Source: Haliotis cracherodii
Taxonomy: Eukaryota
Direction of reading: 5' to 3'
DNA: 64,000 bases
NCBI RefSeq assembly: GCF_022045235.1
Contig: NW_027266265.1
Span: 36,456,001-36,520,000, forward strand
Both the position numbers and the translations under genes were made by a program. The notes under the pieces were generated by a model. It did not search any database, was not told where the DNA came from, and saw only the letters and a program-made list of their open reading frames with translations. Within the stretch, counting starts at the first letter, position 1; every line of letters begins with the position of its first letter. Below are positions 17,901-62,717 of the stretch, piece after piece.

Positions 17901-20900
17901 TCATCTTTGTCCGGCTGAACCCGATATGACGGCAAATAATGCTACAACCGTTGTCAACACTGGCATAGACGAGAGGCGGGATGAACTGTCGCAGACGCGA
18001 GTTTCGTCTGAATTATCAGCGCATTCGTCCACACCATTGCAGGCTAACGTCTTGGCTATGCAGAAGTTGTTGCTGCACTGGAAGGCGTCGTCGAAGCAGC
18101 TTCCTAAAAAACGAAGCAAACAAATTTTGGGCAATGGTCTTTTAACGCTAAAATGTGGTTAAGTATGCTAAAACTTATATTAGTTCACTATTATTTCCTG
18201 ATACTTTTTTTATTATAAAATACAACTTTGTGTTTTTACAAAGCAAAACAAATGGAAAAATGAGTTTAGATCAAAGGAACATTTGATTTTTCGATTTAAC
18301 TTTAATTTGTCCTTCCTTAGTATTTTATGCACACGTTAATACAGCATGTTGAATTTTGTACATATCTCAACCGAGACACGTCATAGCAAAGAGAGTTCAG
18401 GACAAATGTGTTAACAGAATAAAAAAAGATTATGTCGTAATCAGGCACAGTATTGCTGTTGTTGTTGTTGTTGTTAACGATGGTGTTGAACCAACACATT
18501 AACAAGCAGGTCATGTTTGAGTTTGAGGATGACAATGACGGTTTCATTTGGGACGTCATTTTGCCCATCAAAACCGATACCGCCTTGAATATTCTTGAAC
18601 AAAATTATAGCCCATCGCATCAGTGATATAAGAACCCAGATGTATATATCTTTAAACATATTTTATTAATAGTGGCCAATCGGCGATGTAGAAGTCCGCT
18701 AGAAAAATCCTCAAGTCACACATCGGCAGACAATTTCTAACTGGTTACCCTAAAACTGCAAACACCGACAAGCAGATGGTGAAGGATGACCGAAACACAG
18801 GTTATACACGTAGTGGCGTCTCCTGAGTCGAGGCTACTTATACATTGGCCTCAATTCACCCAGCAGTCAATGGGTACCCGGGAGTATGCGATGTAAACGT
18901 AAATGCAGTACCTTCCAGCGCAAAATAGACAGCTTGGATTGTATACTCCCCGGGGAACTGAGACTGCAAAATGAATGGACCCTGTTCCCTTGAGTCGTGT
19001 TACGTTTGAACAGCCGCTGTGTGGATAACGCGCTGTACAGGTGTGTACTGTCATTACCATTGTACCACAGAAGTAAACAGGGACTTACCAATAGGCCCTC
19101 GTTTGAGCGATGTCAGTATGATAGTGAAGGTAGCATCGGAGTCTATTGTGTCCGTGTCATACTGCAGAGCTATGGCTGGCACAGAGGTGTTGAACACCTT
19201 GGTGGCCAATCTAGAGCCGCACAATGTTCCTGTTGGGTGGAAAGTAGAACATATATAGAATAGTATAATTAGGAGATAAACATACTGTGTTTTCAATGTA
19301 GAGCTAGGTTACCTGTAGATTTCACCGCGCTTAATTGAATTTGGAACCGAACCGACTAAATAAAACGCGAACTCTTTGGTGTCAGCAAATATACTGAGTG
19401 AAGCGGCATGGGTTGAGTCCAGTGTTTTGAGTGGGTTCTCGATCTGAATTACGGAATCACCGAAGAAAATAAGGTGCTGTATATACTCAAGCAGTTTGTT
19501 TACACCGTAATACTTCACTCGAATATATGACAGGCATTGAAAGCATATAAAGCACGGCAACTTGGTAAGATAACATGAGGTGGGCATCCCTAAAGAAAAC
19601 AAAGCAAGCTTTGCAAGGCTTTCGCTCTACATCGCGCGTCACCATTATGACGTCATATCGCTCATTATGACGCAAAAGATATGACGTCACAGTCGTAAAT
19701 AGAAAAGGCTCACAATTCCAAGCTCTCTGTTGTCTCCAAAATGTAAATACATTCCCTTTGTTGATTTCTTTCTTGTTTTTTCTGCACGAAATGTATTGCC
19801 ACACATCCTTTGAATATTGTAGTAACCTCATCTTTGCATTTTGTAACCTGTAATTGTATATATAATTATTTAAATATGCCTACCGACAATGACTGAAAAT
19901 AGTACTATTCTATGATTATTAGCTTCCGCGGTGATGCGGCCGTCAAACCTGCTGTTTCACTCAGAGGGGGTTTATTGTGATTTAATAGCCTCTGATTGAC
20001 CAATCAGAATCGAGTAAATTCCAAATTTATGGCAGAATAATGATTTGTCGACGCCATGTTGCACTCAAGTTGACATAATGACGTCACAATATATATACGT
20101 CACAATATGACGTAATGTTTATACTTTTTGATCATGTGGAATATGGGTTTGTCAACGTTATGACGTCACCAATGATAACGTAGTGTGCAATAAGGTCAGA
20201 ATACTTATAATATCCTTGTGGACGCCAAGTTAACACTTCTCCTCTGGGCCCCGTTCCACAAAGCGATCATAGTGCTAAGTCAATCGTAATTCCCATGCTT
20301 TAACATAGACGTACGGCAGTCGTAGCGCTAAGATCGCTTTGAGGAACGGGACCCTGGACACTGTTTTCAATACTTCTTTACAACCGTTTTAAATGGAATG
20401 GATAACACAAAGGTTATAATGAAACTGACTTTACCAAACACGTAAGTCTGAAACACCATCTGTCGGCCAGCACTGGAAGGAATCCATATTAGTTTCGTTC
20501 ACGTGACTATCTCATAACAAACTTAATAAATACTGACATTTTGGCTGGTCTACATTTTTGTACTTCAGATCTATGTATTGACCAACTTGTATTTATCATA
20601 AATGGTTAATGTCATGGATGCGACAAACCAATCCGATAAACTTGAAACACGATCCGATGACTATTCAAATGAGGTCGCCAAGCATGTACTACTTTCAAGC
20701 TCAATACATCAATACATCTATTGACCGCCTCCGTGGTCTAGTGGTAGAGCGTCCGCCCGGAGAGCGGAAGGTCCGGGGTTCGATCCCCGCCCGCGTCATA
20801 CCAAAAGACGTTTAAAGATGGTACTTGTTGTTACCTTGTCTGGCGCTCGGCATTAATGGGCTAAAACAAGGACTGGTCGGCTCGGAGTCAGTGTACTGTG

Positions 20901-23502
20901 TCTGAGTAGGGTATTCATGTTAAACTGCGGCATGGTAACTCAGTGAGCATGCACTATAAATCGGTATCAGTCAGGACTAGTACAAATAGCCACACAAACA
21001 CACACCCGTACATGCACGTCGCTATATAAGTGCAATAATCTTGGACGCGACGTTAAACCCCATTTCACCTCACCTCTTTGTTCTATTGACTAACGTTCTC
21101 AAGATTGGGGTTTCACAATGTGTCGTCGGGGCGGTGGGGTCTAGTGGTTAGATGACATGGGTACAATGTGTGAAGCCCATTTCTGGTGTCTCCCGCCGTG
21201 ATAATGCTGGAATATTGCTAAAAAGCGGCGTAAAACCATACTCACTTACCTACTCATTCACCCAAGTCGTCACGATATGGCTGAAATATTGCCCATGTGA
21301 CGTTAAATAATAACTCACTCACTCACACATTCACCCAAGGACATACAATTGCAGAATAATAACAATTTACCGGATATTCGAGGCCCGAGCGGATCTACGA
21401 TCTCCAGCGTGGTGTTGCATTCCAAGGGGAGGCTGAAGGATGTGATGTCAATGAGGATGCCTAGCGCGTCTTCATCAGTCGCCACGTCCATATTGCACGA
21501 CGACGACAGATTCCCCCTCAGAATCATGCTATCGGAGAAGGAAAGTGTGTCGTCACAGTTGCTCTCCATGGCAACTGAAAAGAACTTGAGGTCAGGGCAT
21601 GGTGTTTATGCTTCGCGGAGAGATGGAGATTTTTAACAAAAATAATGCTTTGTGTTTTTTTGTATTTAAAACATTGCATGTAAAGGCGGCGTAAAACAAT
21701 ACTCACTCACACTTTACTAATTGAAATGGGGCACGGGTGGACCAGTCGTCTAAGGCGCCGCAATTCGCTGTGCAGAGTTGCGTCCCTTGGGCATGGTAGA
21801 ACCTTTGATTGTGGATTCGAATCCCGGTTCGCCCCCATTATGTTTCAAGGTTTGTCAGCACCATACCCGTGCTCGTGTGTTTCAACAAAGTGGTAAACGC
21901 CTGCGACCTGCATCACTTCAGGCTTTCCTCCCATATATAGCTGACAAGCCGTGATATAACTGGAATACTGTAAAAAAGCGGCGTTAAACCAAGCTCACTC
22001 ACTCACTATAAATTTTTTTTGTTATTTAGCGCCACACTCCAGCTACATGGTCCAGCTACATGACGCTATTCACCACGTCACCGAGCCTACCCATCTGATA
22101 TATGTAGTCGCCTCTTGCGACCAGCATAGTCTGTGGGATCTATTCTACCAAAGAAGCATAGGCATATGTAGATACTAGGACAATAAAAATCCGCTCTAAT
22201 CCGGCAGCATAGGCATCCGTAGGTACTTGGACAATAAAATGAGTGAGTATGGTTTTAAGCCGCTCTTAGCTCTACTCCAGCAATATCGCGACAGGGACAC
22301 CAGACATGGGCTTCACACTTGTTGGAAATCAAACCATAGGCGTGACGAGCGAACGTTTAACCACTAGCCTACCTATCCGCCCAATGAACGTGAGGCTGTT
22401 TGGTCAAGCGAAAACGATAACGATGAGATCCAATATAATGGACGCCCACCCTACCCACTTTCCAAAACATCAGACCGCCTCCGTGGTCTAGTGGTAGAGC
22501 TTCCGCCCGGAGAGCGGAAGGTCCGGGGTTCGATCCCCGGCCGCGTCATACTAAAAGACGTTAAAAGATGGTACTTGTTGTCACCCTGTCATATTGAATT
22601 TAGCAAATATTCTGGTTCAATTCGTGACGCTCTACGATCTAGTTACGATACAGGTACGATATAGTTACGAATATTCGTGGGATTCAGCTGGATTCGCTTG
22701 AATATTGTCAGGAATTCACTACGATTCACAAGAAGATATTAGGAATACTGCACGAAAGTTACGAATCAGTTACGAATCAGTTAAGAATACGCCGAATTGT
22801 ACCAATCAGGTACGAATAAAAATGAATTGGTGACTATTCTTGACAATTTTGGGGTGGGTTTTTCCCTCAAGATAGCTTCGGCGTGTATTCGTGGGATTCG
22901 TGACAGATTCGTAGCCGATTCGTCGTAAAGCCACGAATTCACGAATCCTCGAATGACTTATGAATACCTACGAATGCCTACGAACCGATTACGATTCAGT
23001 TACGATGCATAAGAATGCATTACGAATTTGTTACGAATTAACTACGATATTTTTTAATCGGGAGTTCGTGGCCAAAACTGTGAACAGCTCAAAACTTTTG
23101 CCACGAATTCCCCATAGCTCAAGGATAGTAAGAACTAACTACGAATATATGCGAATCAGTTAAAAATTTCACTGATTACGATTCAACTACGAATCCTAAA
23201 ATTTATCAATTCGTGGGATTCGTGGTCTGTGTGGAATAGTAGTATTCCTCAAATAAGCTCATGACCCTGGTAGACATTTTTACCTGACGAACAGACAGCC
23301 TCGTATCATCATTAAACTGCCGACGACCCGAGGCTGCCTGTTTGATCAGGTCAGAAAGGCTATTAGAAGTGGAATGTGGAAAGGGGAAGGTTAGGGGTCA
23401 CCAGGACGTCTGTGTATACTTACATGTCTCTGGTGTTTTGGCACCGCCGCTGGTCCATGTTGACATACACAGAGAGAGAAACACAACAGTATAGGAAGCC
23501 AT
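17901..23502 (-). CDS. Gene B: CUB-like + LDLa protein, 208 aa, GPI-signal-like C-terminus; exons 23502-23424, 21574-21371, 19229-19089, 18103-17901
   Basis: GT-AG, all phase 1. Signal peptide MASYTVVFLSLCMSTWTSGGA. CUB-like NCDDTL..CNMDV..ILIDITSFSL..CNTTLEIVD..GTLCGS..FTIILT. LDLa CFDDAFQCSNNFCIAKTLACNGVDECADNSDE..C. Ends SSSRLSSMPVLTTVVALFAVISGSAGQR*. Confidence 0.88.
18815..19060 (+). mobile_element. Old CORE-SINE-like fragment
   Basis: GGCCTCAATTCACCCAGCAGTCAATGGGTACC resembles the CORE domain; decayed L2-like tail. Confidence 0.4.
20247..20353. mobile_element. PIF/Harbinger-type MITE (107 bp); decayed relatives near 5436-5540, 10405-10500, 35080-35185
   Basis: TIRs GGCCCCGTTCCACAAAGCGATC / GATCGCTTTGAGGAACGGGACC with CTG on both flanks. 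Confidence 0.7.
20723..21075 (+). mobile_element. SINE family B, full length
   Basis: Consensus match to 2697-3047. Confidence 0.88.
21728..22007 (+). mobile_element. SINE family C
   Basis: Consensus match. Confidence 0.85.
22590..23245. mobile_element. TTACGA/TCGT-rich degenerate element (probable non-autonomous DNA transposon) abutting a truncated family B SINE (22472-22590)
   Basis: Dozens of dispersed TTACGA(A/T) and ATTCGT motifs; class not determined. Confidence 0.45.
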
Positions 23503-26289: not shown

Positions 26290-27152
26290 TCAGTATAAAT
26301 TCATCTTGACAACAATCGATGCCGTAGTTAGGCCGACAATACACATCTGTGTTAGTGGGGAAGTAGCAGGCGGAGATGCCGATGTCGGTCTCGGCGGGGA
26401 CAGGGTAGACGAAGGAGTCGATGTCGAGGCAGAAGTTGCTGCCGAGGAAGAAGCTGCTGTCGAAGAAGAAACAGATACCGATGTCGGTTTTGGCGATGAC
26501 AGAGTTGACGAAGAAGTAGATATCGAGGCAGAAGCTGCTGTCGAGGAAGAAGTTGCTGTCGAGGACGAAGAAGATGTCGAGGAAGAAGTAGGTGTCGAGG
26601 AAGTAGAAGATGTCGAGAACGGTGTTGATTGACAAACAGCTGTTTCATCGGAATTATCAGAACACTCGTTGTAGGTATTGCAGACCAAATCCTTTGGGAT
26701 GCACAGCTTGTTGTCACACTGGAAGTCAAGCTGCGAACACGACCCTGGAAGACATAAGCAACACTTCTCTGTCATACAAGAATGAGAGCCTTAAAATATA
26801 AAGCACCTCATGGGGGATGAAACAGGGGCCAAAGGTTTACAAGCGAGTGTATGTCATTGCACGCCGCAACCAGCTATACCAAGGGGATCCGTAAATAATC
26901 GAGTTTGGACCAGACAAACCAGTGATTGATGACGCCGTCGGGATACGTCGCGATCAACAAATCACCGAGCCGGACTTCCCAGAGTCACCTCTTGCGAAAC
27001 TCAACACAGTGGTCGGGACCTGGACCCGCACGTGCCCAAAACAAACGTTACGACGACCGCAAGTCCAATGCTTTAACCCAGAGGTGAAGGTGAGGTGAAA
27101 TTGGGTTGAACGTCGCGTCCAAGATTATTGCACTTATATAGCGACGTGCATG

Positions 27153-27187
<35 letters not shown>

Positions 27188-29116
27188 TGCTAGCTCACTG
27201 AGATACCATGCCGCAGTTTAACATGAATACCCTACTCAGACACAGTATACTGACTCCGAACCGACCAGTCCTTGTTTTAGCCCCTTAATGCCGAGCGCCA
27301 GACAGGGTAACAACAAGTTCCATCTTTTAACGTCTTTTGGTATGACGCGGTCGGGGATCGAACCCCGGTCGGGGATCGAACCCCGAACCTTCCGCTCCCC
27401 GGGCGGACGCTCTACCACTAGACCACGGAGGCGGTACTTTAACCCAGACGTACGATGGTCGTAATGCTAAGATCGTTGTGTGCTCAGTGGGCTCAGTCTC
27501 AGCGAGGTGATTTGTTGAATGAATGTAATGTGAATGAAATACGCCTACCATGGATGAAGTTATTATATTTTTTAGAATAACAATACTCACTATTTTAATT
27601 AAAGTGCTAAAGAGACACATTCTAACCTGGGCCACCACGGTTAGCAGATCGTAACATAAGTGATGAAAATAGGACTTTAATACACACCTTCAATCCCCAT
27701 GTTGAACGCAGTCATGGTGATTGACAATGATTTCCCCTCAGTGTTTGGAGAGTTACTTTTGTAATCAAATTGAGCAAAGTTGCCCGGCGCTTTGAAGACT
27801 TGGGCGTTATCCTCCTTGCATAGAGGACCTGTATCATAAAGCAACAGGTCATTATTATTCATCAAATGTTTTATAAAGTACAAATTTCGTTTTTTAAGTG
27901 TTGATGTGAACAATTTGAAGAGCAACATAATGAGTTTTCAGGATACCAGTATATGTAACGGTATTGTAATGAATTCAGAGGTAAAGCTGAACCCACGAGT
28001 ACGGAAACTGTGTTAACAAATCTAGGATCATATTGAGGGCGAATTTAGGACTCAAATAATGATCGCAGGATCCTTGCACAAATAAGGGACGTCACTCTGC
28101 TCAGAACGTTCATGTAGCGTGGTTGACTGAGCCAAACACTCTGACCATGTATAATCACAAGTACAGAATTCAGAAATAGATTCTGACCAATTGACCTGCC
28201 TTTGCATGTGTTTGTGACAGTTGCCACCGGTAGGACAGGTTACGCTCACCTTTTCGCGAACACCTGGTGTCGTCACTATTTCAGAAACACATGCTCATGA
28301 TAAAGTTGGAATCGTACAATCAACTCTTTTTATGAATATGGGAAGGTGTTTGCCGTTTTCATTTGAAGTTAGAACTCTCCTTACCTGCAATACTGTTTCC
28401 ATTTCCATCTAGGATGTCCAGGCTGGTGTTGTTGCAGCTGTCCACGAGGTCTAACACGGTGATGTCGATGAGGAGCCTTTCGTTTTCCACGTTGCTCTGA
28501 ATGACGAGGTTACATTCCTCCACTGAACGCAGGTCTGAGGCGAGCAATATCACGCTCTCGGAAAAACTCATGGTACTATCACAGTTCTCTTCCAACACCC
28601 CTGAAAACACGTGAAGTAAATATATGTTGCTGGTTGACAAATACGCTTTATGTTTCATGACATACTTAAGAGTGCAATATACTAAACTTAGAGTCACGAT
28701 CTGATAAATATGCAAATGAGTTCCCCTAGCACGAAATAAGTTCCATACATCGATTGGTCCGTTAATTATAACATAACGTCCCTTGTAGGTTTAGATAGAG
28801 GATTGACAATATTGGAGGCCAATTGATTAAGTAGTTTCTATTCCATATACATGTATATGATGAGAAATGTATTTATCAGTGTCTAAAAAATACATATATC
28901 AAGGTCTTCGCGCAGTGTGATATACACGTAAGATGATGTAGGTTGTTAGATATATCCCAGACGGTGTTTTGGTCTATATGAAACAGAAACTATAGACAAC
29001 TATGATTGTCAGCACAACACAGCACCACACTTACATTGCTCTGGTGTTTTTGTACACACGGATCCGATAGAAACAATTGCAATGAAGAGGAGGAAAATTT
29101 CACAACACGACGCCAT
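26290..29116 (-). CDS. Gene C: CUB-like + LDLa + Ser/Thr-rich stalk, 297 aa, GPI-signal-like C-terminus; exons 29116-29035, 28600-28385, 27828-27688, 26744-26290
   Basis: GT-AG, all phase 1; start context CAAGATGGCG. Signal peptide MASCCEIFLLFIAIVSIGSVC. LDLa CSQLDFQCDNKLCIPKDLVCNTYNECSDNSDETAVC. About 90-aa S/T/A/P tract, then MCIVGLTTASIVVKMNLY*. Confidence 0.88.
27083..27436 (-). mobile_element. SINE family B in intron 3 of gene C
   Basis: TSD CTTTAACCCAGA; absent at the paralogous site of gene D (~35125-35150). Confidence 0.9.
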
Positions 29117-33488: not shown

Positions 33489-36400
33489 TCAATTAACGCT
33501 GTCATATCCCCGATGGTGCCTAAGTCTCCTAGTCAGACACAATGCTGCCACTGCGACCGCCAACAAACAAGCGAATGTCACACCAACTATAAGTCCCGCG
33601 TTTTCTCCCAGAGGGGTGTAGTCGGGGCCGTTGCAGTCATTCTCATCTGAGTTATCAGAACACTCGTTGTATCCATTGCACAATAAGTCTTTGGGTATGC
33701 ACAGATTGTTGGCGCACTGGTACTCAATCGAAGCACATTTCCCTGAAACAAAAACAACCAAGACACTTTATGAAATGTGCCAATAGATAAACAGGTTTTT
33801 GACTTTGATAATATTACTGGTTTACTTACTGTTTAAATTGTTTACAATTCGGTCCCCGAAATAAGCATCTGTCAATGCACAGTATGGCCTATTCTTGGTG
33901 AAGAATAATTGTAGAGGAAGAATGTTTCTTTCTCAGAATATGCACACTATGGCCTATTCTGTCTTGGTGAAGAATAATTGTAGAGGAAGAATGTTTCTTT
34001 CTCAGAATATGCACACTATGGCCTATTCTGTTTTGGTGAAGAATAATTGTAGAGGAAGAATGTTTCTTTCTCATAATATGCACACTATGGCCTATTCTGT
34101 CTTTGTGATGAATAATTGTAGAGGAAGAATGTTTCTTTCTCATAATATGCACAGTATGGCCTATTCAGTCTTGGTCAAGAATAATTGTAGAGGAAGAATG
34201 CTTAATTCTCATAATATGCACAGTACGGCCTATTCAGTCTTGGTGAAGAATTATTGTAGAGGAAGAATGTTTCTTTCTCATAAATGCACAGTATGGCCTA
34301 TTCAGTCTTGGTGAAGAATAATTGTAGAGGAAGAATGTCTCTTTCTCATAAAATGCACAGTATGGCCTATTCAGTCTTGGTGAAGAATAATTGTAGAGGA
34401 AGAATGCTTCTTTCTCAGAATATGCACACTATGGCCTATTCAGTCTTGGTGAAGAATAATTGTAGAGGAAGAATGTTTCTTTCTCAGAACATGCACACTA
34501 TGGCCTATTCTGTCTTGGTGAAGAATAATTGTAGAGGAAGAATGTTTCTCATAATATGCACAGTATGGCCTATTCTGTCTTGGTGAAGAATAATTGTAGA
34601 GGAAGAATGTTTCTTTCTCAGAACATGCACAGTATGGCCTATTCTGTCTTGATGAAGAATAATTGTAGAGGAAGAATGTTTCATCCTCATAATATGCACA
34701 GTATGGCCTATTCTTGAAGAAGAATAATTGTAAAGGAAGAATGTTTCTTTCTCAGAATTAATGACGATAAAGCAACATAATGTGAATTTGTAGTGCCGGA
34801 TGTTTTGTCTGAAGGGACCGGAAGTGTAAAAATATATACATTTGGAACATTTACTTAATATATTGTTGCTGTGTTATGATGCTGTTTCGTTCTTGTTGAC
34901 ATGTGCCTGGTATTAATTATTATTTGGTGCACAGAAGGGAACGTTATGTGTGGTCTCCATAGTGATATGTGGTCTCTGGCAGTATCTAGTACTTTCATCA
35001 AAATAGACATCTTACATGGATAAAAACATCATTAGTAAATGGAATATCTCTTGCGAAACGCAATACAGTGCTGGAGACCTGTGTCCACCTGCTCAAAGCA
35101 AACGCTACGACGATCGTAACTCCAATACTTTAACATTGACTTAAGATAGTCGTAACGTTAAGATCGTTGTGTGCGAGTGGGTCCCGCCTTAGCCTGGTGA
35201 TTTGTTGAATGAAAGAATGAAATGCGCTAAAGGTGGATGAGTGAGTGAGTTGGGTTTAAGGCCGCTTTTAACACTATTCCAGTTATATCGTAGCGTGTCA
35301 GCTTAATGTAGGATGAAAGCCCGAAGTGATGCAGGTCTCAGACGTTTGCAACTTCGGTCTATCGTGGATGAAGGATTTATACTTTTTACAATACAAATAA
35401 ACAATATTTTAATTAAAGTGCAACAGAGACACATTCTTACCTGAGTCACATCGGTTAGCAGATCGTAACACAAGTAATGAAAATATGACAACTTTGATAC
35501 AAACCTTCAATCCCCATGTTGAACGCAGTGATGAGGATCGACAATGATTTCCCCTTAGTTTTCGGAGAGTCACTTTTGTAATCAAATTGAGCATAGTTGC
35601 CCGGTGCTTTGAAGACTTGGGCGTTATCCTCCTTACATAGAGGACCTGTATCATGAAGCAACATGTCATTATTATTCATCAAATGTTTTACAAAGAACAA
35701 ATTTCGTTTGAGTTATTAATGTGAACAATTTGAAGAGCACCAGACTAGCAAGGGGCGCGACTGAGGGACGTTTCTGCACCAAACACTCTGACCATGTATA
35801 ATCACAATCATCACTCATTTTTGACAAGTACAGAAATTAGAAATTCTGGCCAATTGACCTGCCTTTGCATGTGTTTCTGACGGGTGGCACCGGTGGGACA
35901 TGATACGTCGACCTTTTCGCGAACACCTGGTGCCGTCACTATTTGATAGTGATTCAAAAACACATGATCGTGTTAAAGTCAGAATCGTACAATCGATTGC
36001 ATTTGGCAGAATCTGAATAATATGTAAAGAGGTTTGTCGATTTCATTTGAAATTAAAACTCTCCATACCTGCAATGCTGTTTCCATTTTCATCTAGGATG
36101 TCCAGACTGGTGTTGCTGCAGCTGTCCACGAGGTCTAACACGGTGATGTCGATGAGGAGCCTTTCGTTTTCCAAGCTGCTCTGAATGACGAGGTTACATT
36201 GCTCCACTGAACGCAGGTTTGAGGCAAACAGTATCACGCTCTCGGAAAAGGGCATGGTACTGTCACAGTTCTCTTCCAGCACAACTGAAAACACGTGAAG
36301 AGAATATCTATTGGTGTTCGTCAAATACGCTCTATATTTCATCGTATGGTTCATCACATACTGCAGAGTGTTTGTGCAATATACTTATCCGATAAACTTA

Positions 36401-36830
36401 GAGTCACGATCTGATACATATGCAAATGAGTTCCCCAAGCACGAAATAAGTTTCATTCATCGATTGGTCCCTAAATTATTGCATAAGGTTCCTTGTAGGT
36501 TTCGATAGAGGTTTGACAATAATGGAGACCAATTGATTAAGTAGTTTCTATTCCATACATATGTATATGATGAGAAAGGTATTTATCAGTGTCTAAAAAA
36601 AACATGTATCAAGGTCTTCGCGCAGTGTGATATACATTATGACGTAAGATGAAGTAGGTGGGTGGAAATATCTAAGACGGTGTTTTGGTGTATATGAAAC
36701 AGAAACTATAGACAACTAGACGGGAGTAGACAGCACCATACTTACATTGGTCTGGTGTTGATTGAGGCCACACGGATCCGGTAGAAATAAGTGCAATGAA
36801 CAAGAGGAGGGTCCTACAACATGACGCCAT
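33489..36830 (-). CDS. Gene D: CUB-like + LDLa + TM type I membrane protein, 231 aa; exons 36830-36746, 36284-36069, 35645-35505, 33742-33489
   Basis: GT-AG, all phase 1. Signal peptide MASCCRTLLLFIALISTGSVWP. LDLa CASIEYQCANNLCIPKDLLCNGYNECSDNSDENDC. TM AGLIVGVTFACLLAVAVAALCL. Tail RRLRHHRGYDSVN*. Confidence 0.9.
33876..34760. repeat. 69-bp minisatellite (~13 copies) in intron 3 of gene D
   Basis: Unit ATGCACA(C/G)TATGGCCTATTCTGTCTTGGTGAAGAATAATTGTAGAGGAAGAATGTTTCTTTCTCA(G/T)AAT. Confidence 0.95.
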
Positions 36831-36993
36831 CTTGGACAGAGATAACATCTTCGACAATGTGTATCAGATACATGGGTCGGCGATACAGCCAAATGACTGT
36901 GTTGATATAGTAGGTTGTTATCGGTATGGTTAAATTTTCTTAATTATACACATGTGATGCATGTCTTTTCACGAAGATATGTTATCCTTACAG

Positions 36994-37365: not shown

Positions 37366-38300
37366 CAAACTGCCGACCAAAAGAAACTTTGCCACTTTAA
37401 AAATGAAATTGCAAAAATTAAAAAAAAAAAAGTTCGACCAGGATCAATTCAAAACACATCGTCAAAACACAACAATGCCCTATGCAGAAAGTGACACACG
37501 TTCACGGGATGTTTTTTTGCCGAAAATGCGAAGAGGTGAAAGACGTGCCGCTTGGGCAGCCAAAACTACACGTGCAATAAGGGTATGTAAATGATACAGA
37601 CGGTATGGCAAGTCAGACACACACACTGATAAGAAAGCATCACAAAAATGCCACGACTGACACCCGAACACCGCGAGCGGGCCCTGGGTAGGATACAGAT
37701 TGTAGCCACCCATGCCCATATTGCTAGAACCTTTGGTTGCTCCCGTGTTGCTGTAACTTACCTGATGCAACGTTACAGACAGACCGGACAGACATCAGAC
37801 ATGCCAAGAACAGGCAGACCCAGTACGCCCAATAAAGACCGGTACTTGCGTACTTTGCATCTCTGGAATCGATTCCTGACAGTGATGACATCAGCGACGG
37901 ATGCCTCCAGGCATATGCTTACTCGACAGGCAGTGGCCAGGGCTACAGGAGTTAGGGCTTACAGACCTACCAGAGGACTATTATTGCCAGTGCAACATCT
38001 TCTTCACAGATAAAAGCCACTTCTGTCAGTTAAGAGCTGATGGAAGATAGCGAGTTTACCGCCGAAGGGAAGAACGAACGGCGGCATGTTGTGTTCAGGT
38101 GGTCGTGCCGTATGGTGTTATGGTGTGGGGATAGATTTGTAGGCAGGAGCGAACACCACTGGTCATCGTTAACGGACATTTGACAGCTCAGTGTTGCATG
38201 GATGACGTTCTTCGTCCGATTGTCCGACCATTTCTATAGCAGCTGCCACGTAGTGTCCTTTATCAGCATGACAACGCCAGACTCCCTACAGCCCGTTTGT
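37366..38300 (+). mobile_element. Decayed Tc1 transposon (transposase pseudogene from 37648)
   Basis: MPRLTPEHRERALG..IARTFGCSR..RYRQTGQTSDMPRTGRP (paired HTH, GRP motif); VMVWG..LVIVNGHLTAQ..DDVLRPIV..YQHDNAR; stops and deletions. Confidence 0.85.
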
Positions 38301-52307: not shown

Positions 52308-55300
52308 TCAGTCAATAGGTAAATATGACCCACGTCTGTTCCTTGCTCGGTGTATTTTGACGGCGAAGACACAAACAACAGCTAACAGAAACACCCCACA
52401 ACATACAGACACAATAACAACTTTCTTCACCAGCTGGTTGCCTTCAGTCGCATTACAGCCTATCGTCTCGTCCGAATTATCGGAGCAGTCATCGAAGCTG
52501 TTGCAGGTCATGTCGCTGTCTATGCAGAGTGAGTTACTGCACGTGAAGTCATAAGACGTACACGCCCCTGCAACAAAGATATCCTCTTAGGCGACTCTGG
52601 TGTTAAGGGTTTTGGTTTGGGATTGGTTTGTTGCTTAACGCCGCACTCAGCCATATTCCAGCTGTATGACGGCGGCTGTAAATAATCGAGTCTGGACCAG
52701 ACAATCCAGTGATTGGTATCATGAGCATCGATCCACGCAATTTGGATCGATTACGTGCATCAACCAAGTCAGGGAGCCTGACCACCCGATCCCGTTAGTC
52801 GCCTCTTACGACAAGCATAGTCGTCTTTTACAGCAAGAATGGGTTGCTGAAGACCTATTCTACCCCGGATCTTCAAGGGTCCCACGCAATTGGGATCGAT
52901 GACATGCATCAACCAAGTCAGCGAGCCTGACCACACGATCCCGTTAGTCGCCTCTTACAACAAGAACAGCCGTCTTTTACAGCAAGGGTGAGTTGCTGAA
53001 GGCCTATTCTACCCCGGATCTTCACGGGTGTAAGTGCACGAGCGTTCTGTAGCACTTACCATTGATCTGTTCGTGAAAGGACGTGATAAGTAAAGTGAAG
53101 ACATCCTGAGAAGCCTCATGCTCGCCACGGTTGGAATGGTACCAAACTCCCACTGACTGACCGCTGGAGTTGAAGACAGGAGTTGTTATGTTGGTACCAC
53201 ATAGACGTTCTTGAAGAAAGAATAAAAAAAAAGAAGAAATAATTATCACAAATGTCATAAAAACTACAATTATATATTAATTATGGTGGATAACGTGAAA
53301 TGTCTACATATATGTAGCGCTCCAGTGAGCTAGGATGAGGGTCAAAAGAAAATATACCCAGTTTGTTTTTTATGTAATTGAAAATTGAAGAATTGTTGTT
53401 AAATTTTATTATATTTGTTTAATCATCACTCATTCCTGCAAAAGTTTACAAAAAGTAATCTGTGGCTGGGTAATTTTGTGTAAACAAATTAGCTTAGTGA
53501 AAATCGGAGTAAGGTATGAATTTGCAACCACATGACCCCAACCATCTTGAAATGTAAATTTGTGTCAAAAAAAGGTAATTTGTTGATTATAAAAGATAAG
53601 ATGTCTAAGATACCCATCGACAGCTGTGTATCAAGTCATTTTTAAAAAGTTAAACGAATTATTTTTCAAATTATATAAAAAAGAAATAAAACCACGTAGA
53701 ATATTCTTTGAGTGCTGACTAAGCGCCAGTACAGTGTTTTTTTGTGTGGATATTTTCAATTGAAAAGCAAACATATAATAAAGTCAACTGAAGCCATAGT
53801 TTCTCTCGCCCCTCAGTTTGTTTGGGTTTAACGCAGCTTTAAACATGGTTTCAAACACGGTGCACAAGAGATGCAGTTTTTAGGCATTTTCGACTTTCGT
53901 GAAACCCACTGGTCTCGGATTTGATGTCTGATTTCAGGCACATGAAATGATTCCTGAACGACATGGTGAACAACATGGATTACACGTGCATACTATGTCA
54001 GAGGGGTACTCAAAGAACGTGATCTAGACTACCAGTTGTCGGACTTTCATTTTTTGTGGACGCCTCGGTGGCTGAGTGGGTTAGATCGCTGACTTTGTGT
54101 GCTGGCGATTAGGTGCCTCACTCTGGCAAGTGTGGGTTCGAATCCCGGACGGGACTCAACCCCCCCCCCCCCGCAATAAAAGAAAAAAAAAGAAAAAAAA
54201 AAGGTACGGGCATCTGTACTTTATTAAGAAAGTGTTATCCCACATATAACATTTGTTACATACTATAATTGATGAAAATATATGATTTACACAATACATA
54301 AATTGTTTGTTTGTCTTTAATTCCCTACTCGTGTATAGTAGTTCTGCTATATAACGTGTGCTGAACCACACATTCTACAACGTCGGGGTGCGATGACACG
54401 CAATCAACAAAGTAACATTGACTGAGAGGATTTTTATGAATTGTCTGAGTTTCCCATCTCCCGCCCGCCCTGAATATCCATTCCGGCGTAAAACATTACA
54501 AAGTTTTCATATCTCAATTTTCCCCGCCGCTGTGGAAACCGATGCTCCGATATGAAAGTTACTACTGCAACTGCACAATCATACAAAAACTAGGTCAGCT
54601 TGAAATTGCTTCAGCTATATCTATTAAATAGTGGCTTCCAAAGAACAGCGACTCGATCTTCGTCGTAAATTAATTTGAATAAAAGCGAAAAAATCATTTC
54701 GCTATATTTGCATATTACGAAATCTCGATTGTACGATTCTGACTATATCAAGAGCATGTGTTTATGATTCACTATCAAATAGTAATGATACAAGGTGTTC
54801 GCGAAAAGGTGAGCCCCACCTGTGGCACCCGTCACAAACACATGCAAAAGCAAGTCAGGTAAGAAGTCCTCCTTTTCGTACACTCACTCACATGGCGGCA
54901 TGAGGTTTTCACATCTGATTCAATTCAATAGAGTGAATCATTGTAGAATCACAACCAATATACCGGAACTTTCTACCTGTACATAGTAGATATATAAGTT
55001 CATCTATAATCATCGTTAACAAGTGACACATGATCCAAGTTAACATAGGGAATTATATCAGACATCATTTTTGTCACTGGTGAGTCACATTTGGAAATGG
55101 GACCCGTGAAGATCCGGCGTACAGTAGGTCTTCAGCAACCCATGCTTGGCGTAAAAGGCGACTATGCTTGTTGTAAGAGGCGACTAACGGGATCGGATGG
55201 TCAGGCTCGCTGACTTGGTTGATGCATGTCATCGATCCCAATTGCGTGCATCAATGCTCATGATGTCAATCACTGAACTGTCTGATCCAGACTCGATTAT

Positions 55301-57056
55301 TTACAGACCGCCATCATATAACTGGAATATGGCTGAGTGCGGCGTTAAACAACAAACAAACAAACAAAAACATTTGGAAATGTCCTCCACTTTTTGGAAG
55401 CTTTACTGTAAACTTGAAGTCTTGGTAGAAAGAGTATGCTCGAGTTATGAAATGTAGACACCAAGGACTCAAGTTGCAAGAATATTGCTCCAAAGTTGAA
55501 GTCATCTCTCTTGTCATATAGTCTTGTGGGGAATATTTGGTTACTAACTGGTACTTTAAAATGTCCTAAAACAAGTCACACGATTAGTAAAAAATGTCTT
55601 TATAAAATTTATTGTTTTTTCTTACTTCTCCCACCCGCTCTCTTGCTGGTGAGGATGGAGATGACAAACACATAAAAAACACGGATGCCTTACCGAATAC
55701 AATAGCTATCTCATAAAATATCTTGTGGAATCCCCACGGAGCCGAACGAAAAGAAACACGTGTGTAATAGGTATGATTCTGTGGCCATCCCAGTCTCACC
55801 TGAAGCATGTTTGCCCTCAATCTGAGACACATGGACGCCGGCTTTCGAGCAATCTGGATAGCCGGGGATGTCAATACTCAGGAGGCGAACTAACAACCGA
55901 TTGCCGTCAACGTCACTTTCAACCAACGTCTTACAACTCTCTTGTTTCTTCCTGGTCTTGTTGACGGATAGTTTGAGAAGCATATCTTCCGAAATAATGA
56001 TCGTATTGCCACATTCTTCAGAAAGCTCAACTGAAAGGATAAAGGATACAGACACTCACCATTGAAACGTCTCCTTCTAAGTCAGCGATGTAAGAAAATA
56101 AGAACGGTATAATATTGTCTTCGAGTGAGTGAGTGAGTTTGGTTTAACGTCGCTTTGAACAGTATTCTAGTTATGTCGAGGCGTGTCAGCTTAATGTGGG
56201 AGGAAAGCCCGAAGTGATGCCGGTCTCAGACGATTACCACTTATTGAAACCCACGAGCACGGGTATGGTGCTGACAAACCTAGAAACAGTATAAAGCCGA
56301 ACCGGTGTACGCGCCCACAAGCATAGGTTCCTGGTGTGCTCAAGGGACGCAAATCCACCTGTGCCCCCGTTTATCTTCGAAGGCATACAGGATAATCAAA
56401 AAAGACAAAGGATGTTGCGCAAAGGATAAAGCAAACATGGCAAAGGATAAAACATAAGTGATAAAGCATAACATATCAACACAAAAGATGAAACATACAT
56501 ATATAGAATGTAGGATAAAGTGTGAAGCATAAACGCCCTGATAAGGAATATAACAGTCACAATTACCCTTACAGATAAATAAAAAAATATTAGCCGATAT
56601 ATGCAGCGTCGTAAATGTGATACTTTAGGAGTCAAATTTGTTATCCAATCGTTGCTTTTCCTGTCTAGGGAGGCAGTGGGGTAGCCTCGTGGATAAAGCG
56701 TTCACTTGCACGCCGGAGACCCGGGTTCGATTCCCCTCTTTGGTACAATGTGTGAAGCCGATTTCTGGTGTCCCCCGCCATGATATGGCTGGAACATGGC
56801 TAAAAGTGGCGGAAAACCATACTCACTAAAACCGATATAATGTCATAACGTACTTACATGACATATTATTTACTCCACTGGGCTAACGAATTGTATTATC
56901 AAGTATACCAATCCTTCGGTTTTAGTGTAAACATAAATACACCACTAAATTAAGGCAAAACAAGTACTTACATGTCTTTGGTGTGTTCTTTTGAGCCTGA
57001 CTGACCCCACGTGTGCCTATCATTACCAGCAAAATAATATTAACATAAAGCTCCAT
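52308..57056 (-). CDS. Gene F: CUB-like + LDLa + TM type I membrane protein, 241 aa; exons 57056-56972, 56030-55800, 53209-53060, 52567-52308
   Basis: GT-AG, all phase 1. Signal peptide MELYVNIILLVMIGTRGVSQA. ECGNTI..SCKTLV..NRLLVRLLSIDIP..DCSK..RLCGTN..FTLLITSF. LDLa CTSYDFTCSNSLCIDSDMTCNSFDDCSDNSDETIGC. TM VVIVSVCCGVFLLAVVCVFAV. Tail RARNRRGSYLPID*. Confidence 0.88.
52615..53029 (-). mobile_element. Family D, 1.5 tandem copies filling intron 3 of gene F
   Basis: Two heads, at ~52880 and ~53029. Confidence 0.85.
54058..54160 (+). pseudogene. Isolated tRNA-derived head (SINE of a fifth family, or tRNA pseudogene)
   Basis: GGTGGCTGAGTGG A box and GGGTTCGAATCCC B box with a long spacer; no clean cloverleaf; followed by a C-run and an A-rich tract. 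Confidence 0.5.
54780..55530 (-). mobile_element. Penelope-like 3' fragment interrupted by a full-length family D copy (55101-55369, +)
   Basis: Minus strand TRLYDKRDDFNF..GVYIS; 3' motif at 54790-54850; D copy has TSD ACATTTGGAAATG. Region 54790-55018 is also homologous to 46940-47163. Confidence 0.75.
56124..56369 (-). mobile_element. SINE family C
   Basis: Reverse-complement consensus match. Confidence 0.8.
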
Positions 57057-58467: not shown

Positions 58468-59445
58468 TGAGTGACTAAGTAGTGTGAGTGTATGAGTGAG
58501 TGTTTGAATGAGTGAGTGTTTGAGTGAGTGTTGAGTGAGTGGTGATTGAGTGAGTGTTGAGTAAGTGTTTGTATGAGTGAACGTGTGAGTGAGTGTTGAG
58601 TGAGTGTTTGAGTGAGTGTTTGAATGAGTGACTGTTTGAGTGAGCGTTGATTGAGTGTTGATTGAGTGAGTGTTTGAGTGAGTGTTGAGTGAGTGTTTGA
58701 ATGAGTTAGTGTTTGAGTGAGTGTTTGAGTGAGTGTTTTGAGTGAGTGTTTGAGTGAGTGGTATTTGAGTGAGTATTTGAGTGAGTGCTATTTGATTGAG
58801 TGTTTCATTGAGTGTTTGAATGAGTTAGTGTTTGAGTGAGTGTTTGAGTGAGTGAGTGATTGAGTGAGTGTTTGAGTGAGTGTTTGAATGAGTGAGTGTT
58901 TGAGTGAGTGTTGAGTGAGTGGTGATTGAGTGAGTGGTATTTGAGTGAGTGTTTGAGTGAGTGTTTGAATGAGTGAGTGTTTGAGTGAGTGTTAAGTGAG
59001 TGGTGAATGAGTGAGTGTTTGAGTGAGTGGTATTTCAGTGAGTGTTTGAGTGAGTGTCAAGTGAGTGGTGAATGAGTGAGTGTTTGAGTGAGTGGTATTT
59101 GAGTGAGTGTTTGAATGAGTGAGAGTTCGAATGAGTGAGTGTTGAGTGAGTGATGATTGAGTGAGTGTTTGAGTGAGTGGTATTTCAGTGAGTGTTTGAG
59201 TGAGTGTTGAGTAAGTGAGTGGTGATTGAGTGAATGTTTGTGTGTGTGTGTATAAGTGAGTATTTGAGTTAGTGGTGTTTGAGTGAGTGTTTCAGTGAGT
59301 TTTTGAGTGAGTGAGTGTTGAGGGAGTGGTGATTGAGTGAACGCTTGAGTGAGTGTTATTTGAGTGAGTGTTTTAGTGAGTGTTATTTGAGTGAGTGTTT
59401 GAATGGTATTTGAGTGATTGTTTAGGTGGTGTTTGAATGAGTGAG
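58468..59445. repeat. ~1-kb compound (GAGT)n/(TGAGTGAGTGTT)n satellite
   Basis: Directly visible; its right end joins a decayed - strand family A SINE (~59440-59530). Confidence 0.95.
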
Positions 59446-59619: not shown

Positions 59620-59840
59620 TTATGTTTGTTTGTTTGTTGTTTAACGCGGCATTTAGCAATATTCAAGCTAAATGACGGCGGTCTGTAAATAATCGAGTTC
59701 AGACCACACAATCCAGTGGCTGACATCATGAGCATCGATTCACGAAATTGGTATACGATGACATGCATCCAACAAGTCAGCGAGGCCTGACCGCCCGATC
59801 CCGGTAGTCGCCTTTTACGACAAGCATGGGTTGCTGAAGA
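59620..59840 (-). mobile_element. Family D
   Basis: Reverse-complement consensus match with a single hairpin unit. Confidence 0.8.
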
Positions 59841-60662: not shown

Positions 60663-62717
60663 ATGGCTGCTAGGATCTTCATGCTATTTAGTTACATTGC
60701 ATTATATAATTTAGGAAGATGTACTTACACACCAACGACATGTGAGTATGACTTTTGGTTTGTTAAGACAGGATACTATCGGATTGAGATGCGCTGTCGG
60801 TTTCAAGTGATTTCAGGTGTGGTCTAGTCGTCTAAGGCGTCGCCTTGCTTGCCGTAAAAGGTGATTATGCTTGTCGTAAAAGGCGACTAACGGGATCGGG
60901 TGGTCAGGCTCGCTTACTTGGTTGATGCATGAGGATATTAATCACTGGATTGTCTGGTCCAGACTCGATTATTTTCAGACCGTCGTCATATAGCTGGAAT
61001 AGTGCTGAGTGCGGCGTTAAACAACAAACCAACCAACCAAAAATCTAAGGCGTCGCAATTAACTATACAGAGTTACGGACCTTTCTTGTGCCAGAGACCG
61101 GTGATCGTGGGTTCGAATCCCAAATTGTTCCTGCTTATGTTATTAGATTTGTAAACACCATACCCAAACTTGGGAGTTTCACCAAAGTCATACATTTCTG
61201 AAACCTGCATCACTTCGGGTTCAGTTGCACAGTATCCTGACACGTCGTGATATAATTGGAATTCTGTTCAAAGATGATCTGGGTCGGAAGAGATCTTCAG
61301 CAGTCCATGCTTGCCGTAAAAGGCGACTATGCTTGTCGTAAGAGACGACTAACGGGATTGGGTGATCAGCCTCGCTGACCTCTTGGCTGATTCTCGCCAA
61401 TCTTGTTACGTCAATGCCACGATTTTGTGCAATGTCTCTACCTATAGTACCCGGGAAGAACACGTCTTCGGCAACTCATGCTTAGCGTAAGAAACGACTA
61501 ACGGGATCGGGTGGTCAGGTTCGCTGACTTGGTTGATGCATGTCATCGTACCACAATTGCGTGGAAAGATGCTCATGTTGTTAATCACTGGATTGTCTGG
61601 CCCAGACTCGATTATTTACTGACCGCCGTCATAAAGCTGGATTATTGTTAAGTGCGGTGTTTAACAACAAACAAACAAACAAACAACTCAAAGCGGCGTT
61701 GTAACCAACTTTATGGCCAAACTATTATTGCTATTCCATGATATCGTTTCAGCAGATTTTACGTGTTACGGTCTGAGAGATCGTTTTAGAACATATAGTG
61801 ACGTCATTAACATGTGTAACATCAAAGATAACGGTAAAGTGAGTGAAGGTACCACATGTTTGTATATCTTCACGATTGTAGCTTTCAATTCCTCTTGAGG
61901 TGATGCAAAAGGAAGTTCTACATAATATGTTTGGGAAACATTTGTTGATATTGGAACTACAAGGGATCTGGGATCTACTGTCAAGTAGATGATTATTACT
62001 CCAGAATTACCCATTAATCTGCCTCCAGTTGGTGGATGTTTGAAAGAATTTGGACATAGAAGAGCTCTATGCTCTGCTCTATGCTTGGCTTATATGATTG
62101 GCTTTAATGCGCTGACAACTTGTGACAGTGAAGAGGACAAAGTGGTAAACGTCTGAGACCTGCATTACTTCGGGCTTTCCTCACACATTAAGTTGAATAC
62201 ACAGCTGGAATACTGTTAAACGCAGCTTTAAACTCACTCACTCACAAATGCTTGACCGAAATCAAGCTTTAGAAATAGATATAGAATGGATGATTTGGTT
62301 GACAGCGTGCCATGGTACTCCGATGACGTGGGACGTTGTTGGAACCTTAACGCTAAAACGCGTTAAACAACAAATGACGTTGAACAGAATGATCTAGTAC
62401 TGCTTCTCCTTATTGCTCATATTAATCACGGTAGAATTCATTAATACGTTTGTTATTGCTTTAAATATTATTTCTTCCAGATTATTTCGACCAGGAATGT
62501 GGCACCACAATAGACTTCACGAAAGACATGCTGCTAGAATTCACAGACAACGGTACAGAGACGGATTCGACAGAGATGTTTTGTACAGTTGTCGTCATGA
62601 CGAAGGAGTTGACACAGCGACTCCTCATAACTCCGCTCAGCATCAATTTAACGGCAAGTGACCTCTGCAACGAGACCTCACTGATCATCCTCAACTCAGA
62701 CGCGCAGCCGCTCAACG
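60663..62717 (+). CDS. Gene G (partial): sixth CUB-like/LDLa family paralogue, first two exons 60663-60741 and 62481-62717; remainder outside the window
   Basis: Signal exon MAARIFMLFSYIALYNLGRCTYTPTT (79 nt, phase 1, same TPxx ending as most paralogues). Exon 2 YYFDQECGTTIDFTKDMLLEF..FCTVVV..QRLLITPLSINL..LCNETSLIILNSD aligns with exon 2 of B-F. LDLa exon not seen. Confidence 0.8.
60815..61690 (+). mobile_element. Nested SINE cluster: family C copy interrupted by several family D copies
   Basis: D copy 60845-61041 bounded by TSD TCTAAGGCGTCGC inside the C head; more D pieces at 61270-61685. Confidence 0.8.

Follow-up and report, generated by a model that had tools for sequence, protein, structure and literature searches.

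Most of what is known of single-pass proteins that combine CUB and LDLa modules concerns auxiliary subunits of neurotransmitter receptors, besides some endocytic receptors that have been little studied. LDLRAD2, a single-copy protein made of a signal peptide, a CUB domain, an LDLa module and a transmembrane helix, is to our knowledge functionally uncharacterised (a literature search for LDLRAD2 together with CUB returned nothing), and we know of no animal in which the minimal one-CUB form has an assigned function. The well-studied type I CUB-LDLa proteins of invertebrates are auxiliary or clustering subunits (PMC9083331). In C. elegans, LEV-10, which carries five CUB domains, an LDLa module and a transmembrane helix, is involved in the clustering of acetylcholine receptors, for which its ectodomain alone is sufficient (PMC9083331).

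In this study, we have analysed a window of 64,000 nucleotides from the abalone Haliotis cracherodii (contig NW_027266265.1, positions 36,456,001 to 36,520,000), which covers one end of a tandem array of 14 genes for small CUB-LDLa proteins, about 143 kb long (chromosome piece C2, 36,477,372-36,616,794). A first-pass annotation had counted six paralogues; six are indeed present in the window, but that number is set by the window's borders and not by the array. Gene-family expansion of a familiar domain plan is common in molluscs, and the array is an expansion of this kind, its domain plan being already known.

Results

Exon plan and transcription of the window genes

A search for open frames with AG/GT borders recovered one shared exon plan in 6/6 window genes, here called B to G (Table 1): a signal exon (e1), two CUB exons (e2 and e3) and a last exon that codes for the LDLa module and the anchor, as had been described at first for the six paralogues. 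Given the lengths of e1 to e3, with e1 being 1 mod 3 in each gene, all introns are in phase 1. Five LDLa-coding exons fall inside the window (close to 18017, 26658, 33656, 42833 and 52481), all of them on the minus strand. The third and last exons of gene G lie 0.45 and 2.1 kb past the window end (L005:454-603 and L005:2125-2363), and they add an LDLa module, a transmembrane helix and a tail with YTQI.

Table 1. Exon coordinates of the CUB-LDLa genes in the window and features of their predicted products (products of B to F as predicted from the exons listed)
Gene	Span	Strand	e1	e2	e3	Last exon	Predicted product
B	17901..23502	-	23502-23424 (79 nt)	21574-21371 (204 nt)	19229-19089 (141 nt)	18103-17901	208 aa; signal peptide, CUB, LDLa, short Ser-rich linker, weakly hydrophobic C-end
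C	26290..29116	-	29116-29035 (82 nt)	28600-28385 (216 nt)	27828-27688 (141 nt)	26744-26290	CUB, LDLa, 93-aa stalk of 65% Ser/Thr, weak hydrophobic C-end
D	33489..36830	-	36830-36746 (85 nt)	36284-36069 (216 nt)	35645-35505 (141 nt)	33742-33489	CUB, LDLa, transmembrane helix, 15-aa basic tail with GYDSVN at its end
E	42669..47576	-	47576-47492 (85 nt)	45471-45256 (216 nt)	44391-44251 (141 nt)	42919-42669	230 aa; CUB, LDLa, transmembrane helix, tail with GYDSV at its end
F	52308..57056	-	57056-56972 (85 nt)	56030-55800 (231 nt)	53209-53060 (150 nt)	52567-52308	241 aa; divergent CUB, LDLa, transmembrane helix, basic tail with YLPI
G (first two exons)	60663..62717	+	60663-60741 (79 nt)	62481-62717 (237 nt)			

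Spliced exon joins were used for translation checks, the tree and dN/dS, and exons or database proteins for the searches. The window genes are real, and at least one of them is transcribed and spliced. Spliced contigs from four public RNA runs, belonging to four studies, contain the three junctions of gene E at the predicted sites (42918>44250, 44390>45255 and 45471>47492, the first and the last with reported CT..AC ends), which confirms the expectation of spliced transcripts for this gene; RNA evidence is confined to E, the other genes resting on NCBI models. The model of E is identical to XP_071087771.1 (P0161), that of B equals P0156 (208/208), and C and D agree with NCBI proteins apart from their starts: C equals P0005 over 297/297 residues counted from the second Met, the NCBI start being an upstream ATG at 29137, and D equals P0002 over 193/193, the NCBI start lying inside e2, without the signal exon.

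Anchors and tails

Signal peptides, transmembrane helices and C-ends were judged by simple hydropathy. On this measure, D-G have a strongly hydrophobic transmembrane stretch (2.75-3.13) with a basic stop of 4-5 K/R, followed by basic tails of 14-18 residues in which a YxxPhi motif (YDSV, YDSV, YLPI and YTQI; of the GYxxPhi form in D and E) is found about 9-12 residues past the helix. Close to the C-end of a short tail, YxxPhi and GYxxPhi serve as sorting signals for AP complexes. Although the motif is short, its conservation at the same place near the C-end of the orthologues, as YDSV, YDSI, YLSV and YKEI with variable x residues, argues against a chance origin, and the tails of D-G, short, predicted to be cytosolic and with the motif at least 7 residues from the membrane, have the appearance of such signals. 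No obvious class I PDZ ligand was seen at the C-ends of B-G.

The C-terminal hydrophobic 19-mers of B and C are weaker (KD 1.85 and 1.34), and only 5 residues with one K/R follow them. Their pattern, in which a polar spacer separates a small omega residue from a terminal hydrophobic stretch, with no cytosolic tail behind it, suggests a putative GPI anchor, the alternative being a tail-less transmembrane helix. The variation in anchors that had been annotated was upheld, with a transmembrane helix and tyrosine tail in D, E and F; the GPI-like calls for B and C reflect a C-terminal pattern. In gene C, the stalk holds a 99-bp x2 tandem duplication (26374-26569).

By analogy with small LDLa/CUB endocytic receptors, we propose that the YxxPhi tails of D-G would couple a ligand-binding ectodomain to clathrin/AP-mediated internalisation or to endolysosomal sorting, and that B and C, either GPI-anchored or tail-less, would hold the ectodomain at the surface without internalisation signals, in the case of C on a mucin-like stalk. 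We give this reading a probability of roughly 0.55.

CUB and LDLa modules

Single exon-2 translations gave no CUB match with Pfam. At the PF00431 cut-off (21.4 bits), gene D (P0002) and the E orthologues P0001 and P0004 produced no match and P0003 reached 16.2 bits; array member I (P0020) and the F orthologue P0070 passed with 23.7 bits each, and relatives from Gigantopelta, Patella and Tegillarca scored 28.7, 38.2 and 49.0 bits, respectively. An exon-2 profile built from 14 paralogues matches a 27-CUB cubilin-like protein (E 7e-50, 19 stretches) as well as other multi-CUB proteins. When compared with the PDB, the full-length family profile finds cubilin (9e-31), NETO2 (5e-22) and enteropeptidase (1e-16), together with neuropilin-1/2, PCPE-1, C1r, MASP-2 and TSG-6. 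The CUB fold that had been expected for exons 2 and 3 is supported by AlphaFold models of the H. rufescens orthologue of E and of B (pLDDT 79.6 and 77.4; 82-95 in the CUB core), both of which match NETO2 and spermadhesin (TM 0.80-0.84, rmsd 2.1-2.2 Å), with a beta-sandwich CUB fold superposable on spermadhesin at TM 0.84 and 0.80.

Each of 17 family members retains the four Cys of the CUB domain. The first Asp of the Ca2+ site, three residues after the third Cys, is present in 84% of 44 reference CUBs and is replaced by T, A or N in 16/16 gastropod members, Tegillarca being the only family member with D at this position; the second Asp (F-x-S/T-D motif) is kept in 11/14 array members, with N or S in its place in C, E and F. 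The CUB domain of the window clade is, judging from the hits to cubilin, NETO2 and neuropilin and from the AlphaFold models, genuine but divergent, with the usual calcium-site Asp lost, and it would not belong to the Ca2+-binding subtype (C1r/C1s, MASP and cubilin type). For the LDLa module, B-E score 36-44 bits with Pfam Ldl_recept_a (PF00057, cut-off 24.1 bits; gene B 36 bits) and relatives 32-45 bits, the H. rubra F orthologue P0070 also passes, and the motif is present in frame in gene F. Ten residues are nearly invariant (C144, C151, C156, C163, C169, C179, D171, S173, D174 and E175, the last four forming the D-x-S-D-E calcium cage). The six Cys, the cage and the Pfam score together point to a regular LDLa module.

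In Foldseek, both models align best with the GluK2-bound NETO2 (E 5e-8 to 6e-8), and the profile match to NETO2 is unbroken from the CUB through the LDLa to the transmembrane helix. These matches, and the roles of the well-studied invertebrate proteins with this architecture (PMC9083331), speak for the view that the abalone proteins are auxiliary or clustering subunits of the NETO/SOL-2/LEV-10 type, which would bind a channel or receptor in cis and adjust its gating or its placement, with the array serving diversified partners. However, most of the likeness to NETO2 could be expected of any CUB-LDLa-transmembrane chain, and the abalone proteins differ from the two to five CUBs of this type in having a single one. 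In addition, B-G show no evident PDZ-type C-terminus, and the tail-less, mucin-stalked and secreted-looking variants (B, C and J) fit poorly. We hold such a function to be rather unlikely, and retain internalisation or sorting by D-G, with B and C kept at the surface, as the preferred reading.

Extent of the array and origin of gene D

A profile search of the 1.18-Gb genome located 14 exon-2 copies, each with E 1e-8 to 1e-26 and all on C2, with no close copy elsewhere; the other exons of the array were mapped as well. Weak matches on C11 (E 0.004-0.08) were discarded as family members: they are plain CUB exons that carry the canonical motif and differ in exon structure. The paralogy of exon 2 among B-E is far above chance (tblastn E 1e-5 to 1e-51); for F and G the pairwise signal is weaker (E 1e-5 to 3e-4, 25-27% identity), and their membership is secured by the genome profile search, which scores all 14 copies within the range given above. 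Exon 2 of C and D is 89% identical, short of the near-identity annotated for this pair. In the tree, B-G form a derived clade of their own within the family, with long branches. Array member J has an in-frame stop in its LDLa exon, leaving a truncated, CUB-only form; apart from that exon, every reading frame is open, the splice sites are intact and no Cys is lost.

Gene D is a composite, with exons 1-3 resembling C and a last exon resembling E. It is collinear with C over 35359-36928 (80-87%; blastn) and similar to E over 33495-33780 only (92.3%; blastn). The CUB dS is 0.167 between C and D and 1.09 between D and E, and the D-E dS of the last exon is 0.047. A recent copying of the last exon of E into D by gene conversion, in a tract of roughly 290 bp, fits these data better than unequal crossing-over, which was set aside because D and E resemble each other over no more than about 290 bp at the last exon, without collinear flanks.

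Selection and spread among molluscs

Pairwise dN/dS in the CUB domain is 0.13-0.55, that is, purifying on average, and shows nothing that would indicate diversifying selection. B, E, F, G, H, J and L have one-to-one orthologues in H. rufescens, H. rubra or H. asinina; those of F and G in H. rubra, P0070 and P0038, are 70% and 79% identical, the unusual C-end of B is conserved in H. rufescens (97% identity), and the truncated form of J is kept in two species. The array is thus an old and stable one in Haliotis, where signs of birth-and-death turnover are confined to C/D. CUB-LDLa relatives of 190-270 aa were found in Gigantopelta, Patella, Pomacea and the bivalve Tegillarca, with further matches to partial models from Batillaria and Nucella; a word-based protein search with the family alignment returned 9 proteins and was set aside as a measure of taxonomic breadth. 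These relatives contradict the idea of a lineage-specific family, as first put forward, and its diversification is not seen in the pairwise dN/dS values. Nor is the system undescribed in the strict sense, since its proteins are already present in the NCBI annotation as uncharacterized or 'LRP-like', which makes them uncharacterised rather than undiscovered; our literature search found no paper on the Haliotis or mollusc CUB-LDLa family. The automatic names given by NCBI to family members ('LRP1-like', 'LRP8-like' and 'MFRP-like') are best-hit labels and not evidence of orthology, and the present analysis corrects what is misleading in them.

The same data bear on the suggestion that the array diversifies as a system of paired receptors, serving recognition in immunity, in symbiosis or between gametes, in which tailed members would be matched with tail-less decoys or co-receptors. 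The tandem arrangement and the long branches of the B-G clade are in keeping with it, as are the persistence of the CUB-only J and the combination, in C and D, of highly similar CUB exons with different anchors, the one in D coming from E. Against it stand the low dN/dS and the one-to-one orthology over four Haliotis species, with turnover hinted at only in C/D. The window-gene C-ends also lack a motif of the ITIM/ITAM type, (S/I/V/L)xYxx(I/V/L), the residue at position -2 being R or G. The transmembrane stretches hold no charged residue either, so that these proteins do not look like paired activating/inhibitory immune receptors. As for the pairing itself, C and D are the only genes that look paired, with a similar ectodomain and a different anchor, and the claim that tailed members have tail-less partners fits this single case. 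We consider a paired-receptor system distinctly unlikely.

It could also be argued that the array consists largely of decaying duplicates without function, the variety of anchors being mere degeneration, as the stop in the LDLa exon of J and the NCBI model of D without a signal exon might suggest. The remaining exons are intact, as described, dN/dS is well below 1, gene E is spliced in RNA and even the atypical C-end of B is conserved between species, all of which make wholesale decay highly improbable. Functional receptors with divergent fates, internalised in D-G and surface-retained in B and C, remain the interpretation that we favour.

Discussion

The array encodes small proteins of about 210-300 aa that are predicted to be type I surface proteins, each with a signal peptide, one divergent CUB lacking the canonical Ca2+-site Asp, one LDLa with an intact calcium cage, a short stalk and an anchor. 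The variety of anchors probably arose by ordinary genomic processes, namely internal tandem duplication (the stalk of C), gene conversion (the last exon of D, from E) and decay of an LDLa exon (J). As a bolder extension, which we regard as unlikely, B-G could represent an abalone-specific offshoot of an old molluscan CUB-LDLa receptor family, without the canonical calcium site of the CUB, and could act as a set of surface recognition receptors whose fate is switched by exchange of the last exon, with C, D and E as a recent matched trio and thus a non-immunoglobulin analogue of paired receptors. If so, the fates within the B-G clade would be internalising (helix plus YxxPhi), surface-retained (GPI-like, mucin-stalked) and secreted. 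In any event, the 14 genes offer a tractable natural series in which to study the ligand of the CUB-LDLa ectodomain and the effect of the anchor, with natural transmembrane, tail-less, mucin-stalked and truncated versions and one recent last-exon exchange.

The comparison with NETO, LEV-10 and LDLRAD2-type proteins drawn in the first-pass annotation was apt, NETO2 being the best structural match and one of the top profile matches. NETO1/NETO2, Drosophila Neto and C. elegans SOL-2 share with the abalone family a type I topology, a CUB directly before the LDLa and a single transmembrane helix; they have two CUBs before the LDLa (PMC9083331), whereas every abalone model and annotated relative has one. 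NETO1/2 have a PDZ-binding C-terminus, in contrast to the abalone tails of 14-18 aa, which show no recognisable PDZ ligand and are missing in some members, and NETO/SOL-2 are encoded by one or two genes instead of a 14-gene tandem array. NETO2, the closest solved structure, is a channel auxiliary subunit and not an endocytic receptor. LEV-10 also places CUB and LDLa on a type I protein, but it has five CUBs, is a single gene and can dispense with its LDLa.

Other proteins share the modules in different arrangements. LRP3/LRP12 and MFRP carry alternating CUB and LDLa modules on a membrane protein, and the tails of LRP3/12 are endocytic; LRP3/12, however, combine two CUBs with several LDLa modules, and MFRP is a type II protein with a Frizzled domain, unlike the abalone proteins with their one CUB and one LDLa. 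The CUB-LDLa part of the enteropeptidase heavy chain and the repeats of cubilin give strong profile matches, which identifies the CUB-LDLa junction as a standard module pair, but both come from large multidomain proteins, and the Ca2+-binding Asp lost by the gastropod family is retained in the CUBs of cubilin. Vertebrate LDLRAD2 has the same minimal architecture as the abalone proteins and a similar size (~270 aa).

Gene plan and extent of the array

The six paralogues B to G are securely identified as small CUB-LDLa type I surface proteins. A motif scan of the window located five minus-strand exons of LDLa type, with Pfam Ldl_recept_a scores of 36-44 bits for B-E against a cut-off of 24.1, and a search for open, phase-1 exons bordered by AG and GT recovered a single consistent plan in 6/6 genes, namely a signal exon, two CUB exons and an LDLa-plus-anchor exon, as the first-pass annotation had proposed. 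Since exon 1 always exceeds a multiple of three by one nucleotide and the internal exons have lengths divisible by three, every intron is in phase 1, as had also been claimed. G is on the plus strand, head-to-head with F. The models are identical to the NCBI proteins P0156 (B), XP_071087771.1 (E), P0005 (C, except for an upstream start in the NCBI model) and P0002 (D, the NCBI start of which falls within exon 2). In G, the first base of a 45-bp tandem repeat is the last base of exon 2, and the repeat unit includes the donor GGTAAGTGC, so that intron 2 begins with about 14 repeated splice donor copies.

Rather than the six members initially described, the array comprises 14, as counted with the exon-2 profile in the H. 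cracherodii assembly (1.18 Gb, 80 pieces; the window is C2:36456001-36520000), where this profile found no close copy outside the C2 array. Exon 2, exon 3 and the LDLa exon were located for 14/14 array genes, and the array terminates at B. The LDLa exon of J has an in-frame stop within the calcium-cage motif. NCBI models J as CUB-only in H. cracherodii (P0157, 166 aa), as it does the orthologue in H. rufescens (P0026, 158 aa), and therefore the truncation may be common to the two species. A cluster of canonical CUB exons on C11, weakly matched by the exon-2 profile, was rejected as part of the family, as it has no intron between the fourth Cys and the rest of the domain; it is a separate CUB gene group.

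Features of the array and its surroundings (window positions unless a contig or stretch is named; L005, L007 and L016 are stretches of genome outside the window)
Feature	Position	Length	Remarks
Signal exon (exon 1), B-G		79-85 nt	1 mod 3 in all
Exon 2, B-G		204-237 nt	three conserved Cys
Exon 3		141-150 nt	starts close to fourth Cys
Last exon			one residue of this exon precedes first LDLa Cys
G exon 3	L005:454-603		just past window end
G exon 4	L005:2125-2363		just past window end
Exon-2 copies (14)	C2:36,477,372 to 36,616,794		B, C, D, E, F (minus); G, H (plus); J, I, K, L, M, N, O (minus)
J LDLa exon	L007:8271-8396, minus (C2:36538271-36538396)		in-frame stop
D-E similarity	33495-33780 vs 42672-42956	~290 bp	92.3% identity
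E exon joints	42918>44250, 44390>45255, 45471>47492
E shortening in P0160	45429-45471		alternative acceptor 45429
E high-depth segments	43135-43321, 43696-44069, 44444-44817, 45566-45752, 47623-47800
Tandem repeat, D intron 3	33875-34758	69 bp x13
Tandem repeat, upstream of E exon 1	48673-49154	49 bp x9.9
Tandem repeat between F and G	58468-59443	12/27 bp	G-rich, (TGAG)n-type
Tandem repeat, G intron 2	62717-63374	45 bp x14.6	85% matches
Transposase-like ORF between D and E	37648-38013 (+)
CUB exon cluster on C11	G000:C11:13.15-13.37 Mb (L016:7793-8131, minus)

Transcription of gene E and repeats

RNA contigs from four public runs, belonging to four studies, were placed on window 42200-47800. 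They reproduce the exon joints of E exactly, the parts skipped at the first and last joints ending in CT..AC (GT..AG on the minus strand), and a 499-nt contig spans exons 3, 2 and 1 with zero mismatches. The objection that spliced transcripts might be lacking thus fails for E, the gene examined. NCBI isoform X2 of E (P0160, 216 aa) is without the 14 residues opening exon 2, the first CUB Cys among them, which is consistent with an alternative acceptor from the exon search. Five intron segments of E show very high summed contig depth in 4/4 runs and numerous loose ends, and most likely belong to abundant interspersed (SINE-like) repeats of which copies are transcribed elsewhere. Of the other repeats, the G-rich array between F and G accounts for a GC-skew spike of 0.48. 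By eye, an ORF between D and E is like the N-terminal helix-turn-helix of Tc1/mariner-type transposases, and similar ORFs are present in L016.

The CUB and LDLa domains

Single proteins of the window clade stay under the Pfam CUB cut-off, the best of them reaching 16.2 bits; array member I, the orthologue of F and relatives in other molluscs pass it with 23.7-49 bits. When the exon-2 profile was run against 1.84 billion proteins, multi-CUB proteins came first, one example being a protein of 3,634 aa in which Pfam recognises 27 CUB domains. Against the PDB, the full-length profile matched cubilin (9e-31) and, in a single stretch across CUB, LDLa and transmembrane helix, NETO2 (5e-22), a CUB-CUB-LDLa-TM protein, as well as enteropeptidase, neuropilins, PCPE-1, C1r and MASP-2. 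The AlphaFold models of E's orthologue and of B (pLDDT 79.6 and 77.4) are both beta-sandwiches, superposing on spermadhesin with TM scores of 0.84 and 0.80, respectively, and on NETO2 across about 200 columns. These profile matches, the scores of the relatives and the models bear out the CUB fold proposed earlier, and the domain is a divergent CUB. Set beside 44 reference CUBs, the family retains all four Cys. C1s-type CUBs have a Ca2+-binding Asp three residues past Cys3; in its place the gastropod members all carry T, A or N, and the bivalve alone has D. The calcium cage of the LDLa domain is intact, and any Ca2+ dependence of ligand binding would be expected to come from the LDLa rather than from the CUB.

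Membrane anchors and the origin of D

The anchor 19-mers of D-G are strongly hydrophobic (hydropathy, KD, 2.75-3.13) and are followed by 4-5 Lys/Arg and, about 9-12 residues past the membrane and close to the C-end, by the tyrosine-based motif YxxPhi (YDSV in D and E, YLPI in F, YTQI in G), which orthologues keep with varying inner residues (YDSI, YLSV, YKEI). The terminal segments of B and C are less hydrophobic (KD 1.85 and 1.34), with five residues beyond; C also bears a stalk of 93 aa, 65% Ser/Thr, including a 99-bp x2 tandem duplication. Of the anchor types first assigned, the transmembrane helix with tyrosine tail in D-F and the mucin-like stalk in C hold, and GPI attachment of B and C, for which the ends show a weak hydrophobic pattern, is plausible.

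D is collinear with C across exons 1-3 and their introns, at 80-87% identity, and its similarity to E is limited to the last exon. The dS values follow the same division: in the CUB they are 0.167 for C-D and 1.09 for D-E, and in the last exon 0.047 for D-E. From this combination of a C-like body and an E-like last exon with low dS, we infer that the anchor exon of D is a recent gene-conversion-like transfer from E.

Relatives of H and I are annotated with an additional exon that extends the tail; B-G end with the LDLa exon. These longer tails (P0020, P0035, P0059 and P0135) bear P-S-Y or P-P-x-Y-like motifs in the extra exon, such as PPSY in Gigantopelta and PPPY in Tegillarca, which are absent in B-G and would fit binding to WW-domain ubiquitin ligases.

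Distribution and selection

Contrary to the earlier suggestion, the family is not lineage-specific: members of like size and plan are present in Haliotis rufescens, H. rubra, H. asinina, Gigantopelta aegis, Patella caerulea, Pomacea canaliculata and the bivalve Tegillarca granosa, and partial models of Batillaria attramentaria and Nucella lapillus match it. A maximum-likelihood tree of 30 rows unites B-G in a clade (support 97/97), within which B, E, F and G are each joined to an orthologue of a different Haliotis species (100/100); the base of the tree, with H-O, Gigantopelta and Patella, is unresolved. A single 524-kb contig of H. rubra carries orthologues of E, F, G and H, and therefore the array is older than the split of these abalones. 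As to the idea of a diversifying family, pairwise dN/dS of the CUB is 0.13-0.55, with the majority of paralogue pairs near or past silent-site saturation, and pervasive diversifying selection is not supported by these sequences.

Discussion

The tails of D-G are basic and very short, and the YxxPhi conserved near their C-end, GYxxPhi in D and E, suggests a role in internalisation or endolysosomal sorting. A ligand bound by D-G would be internalised or sorted to endolysosomes, and B and C would present a similar ectodomain devoid of sorting signals. The earlier proposal of paired immune receptors rests mainly on the C/D pair, which does speak for it, but B-G contain neither an ITIM/ITAM consensus nor a charged transmembrane residue. 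The main rival to internalisation or sorting is a NETO-like auxiliary role. Vertebrate LDLRAD2 is among the proteins nearest in plan to those of the abalone. So, too, are the NETO/SOL-2-type proteins (PMC9083331).
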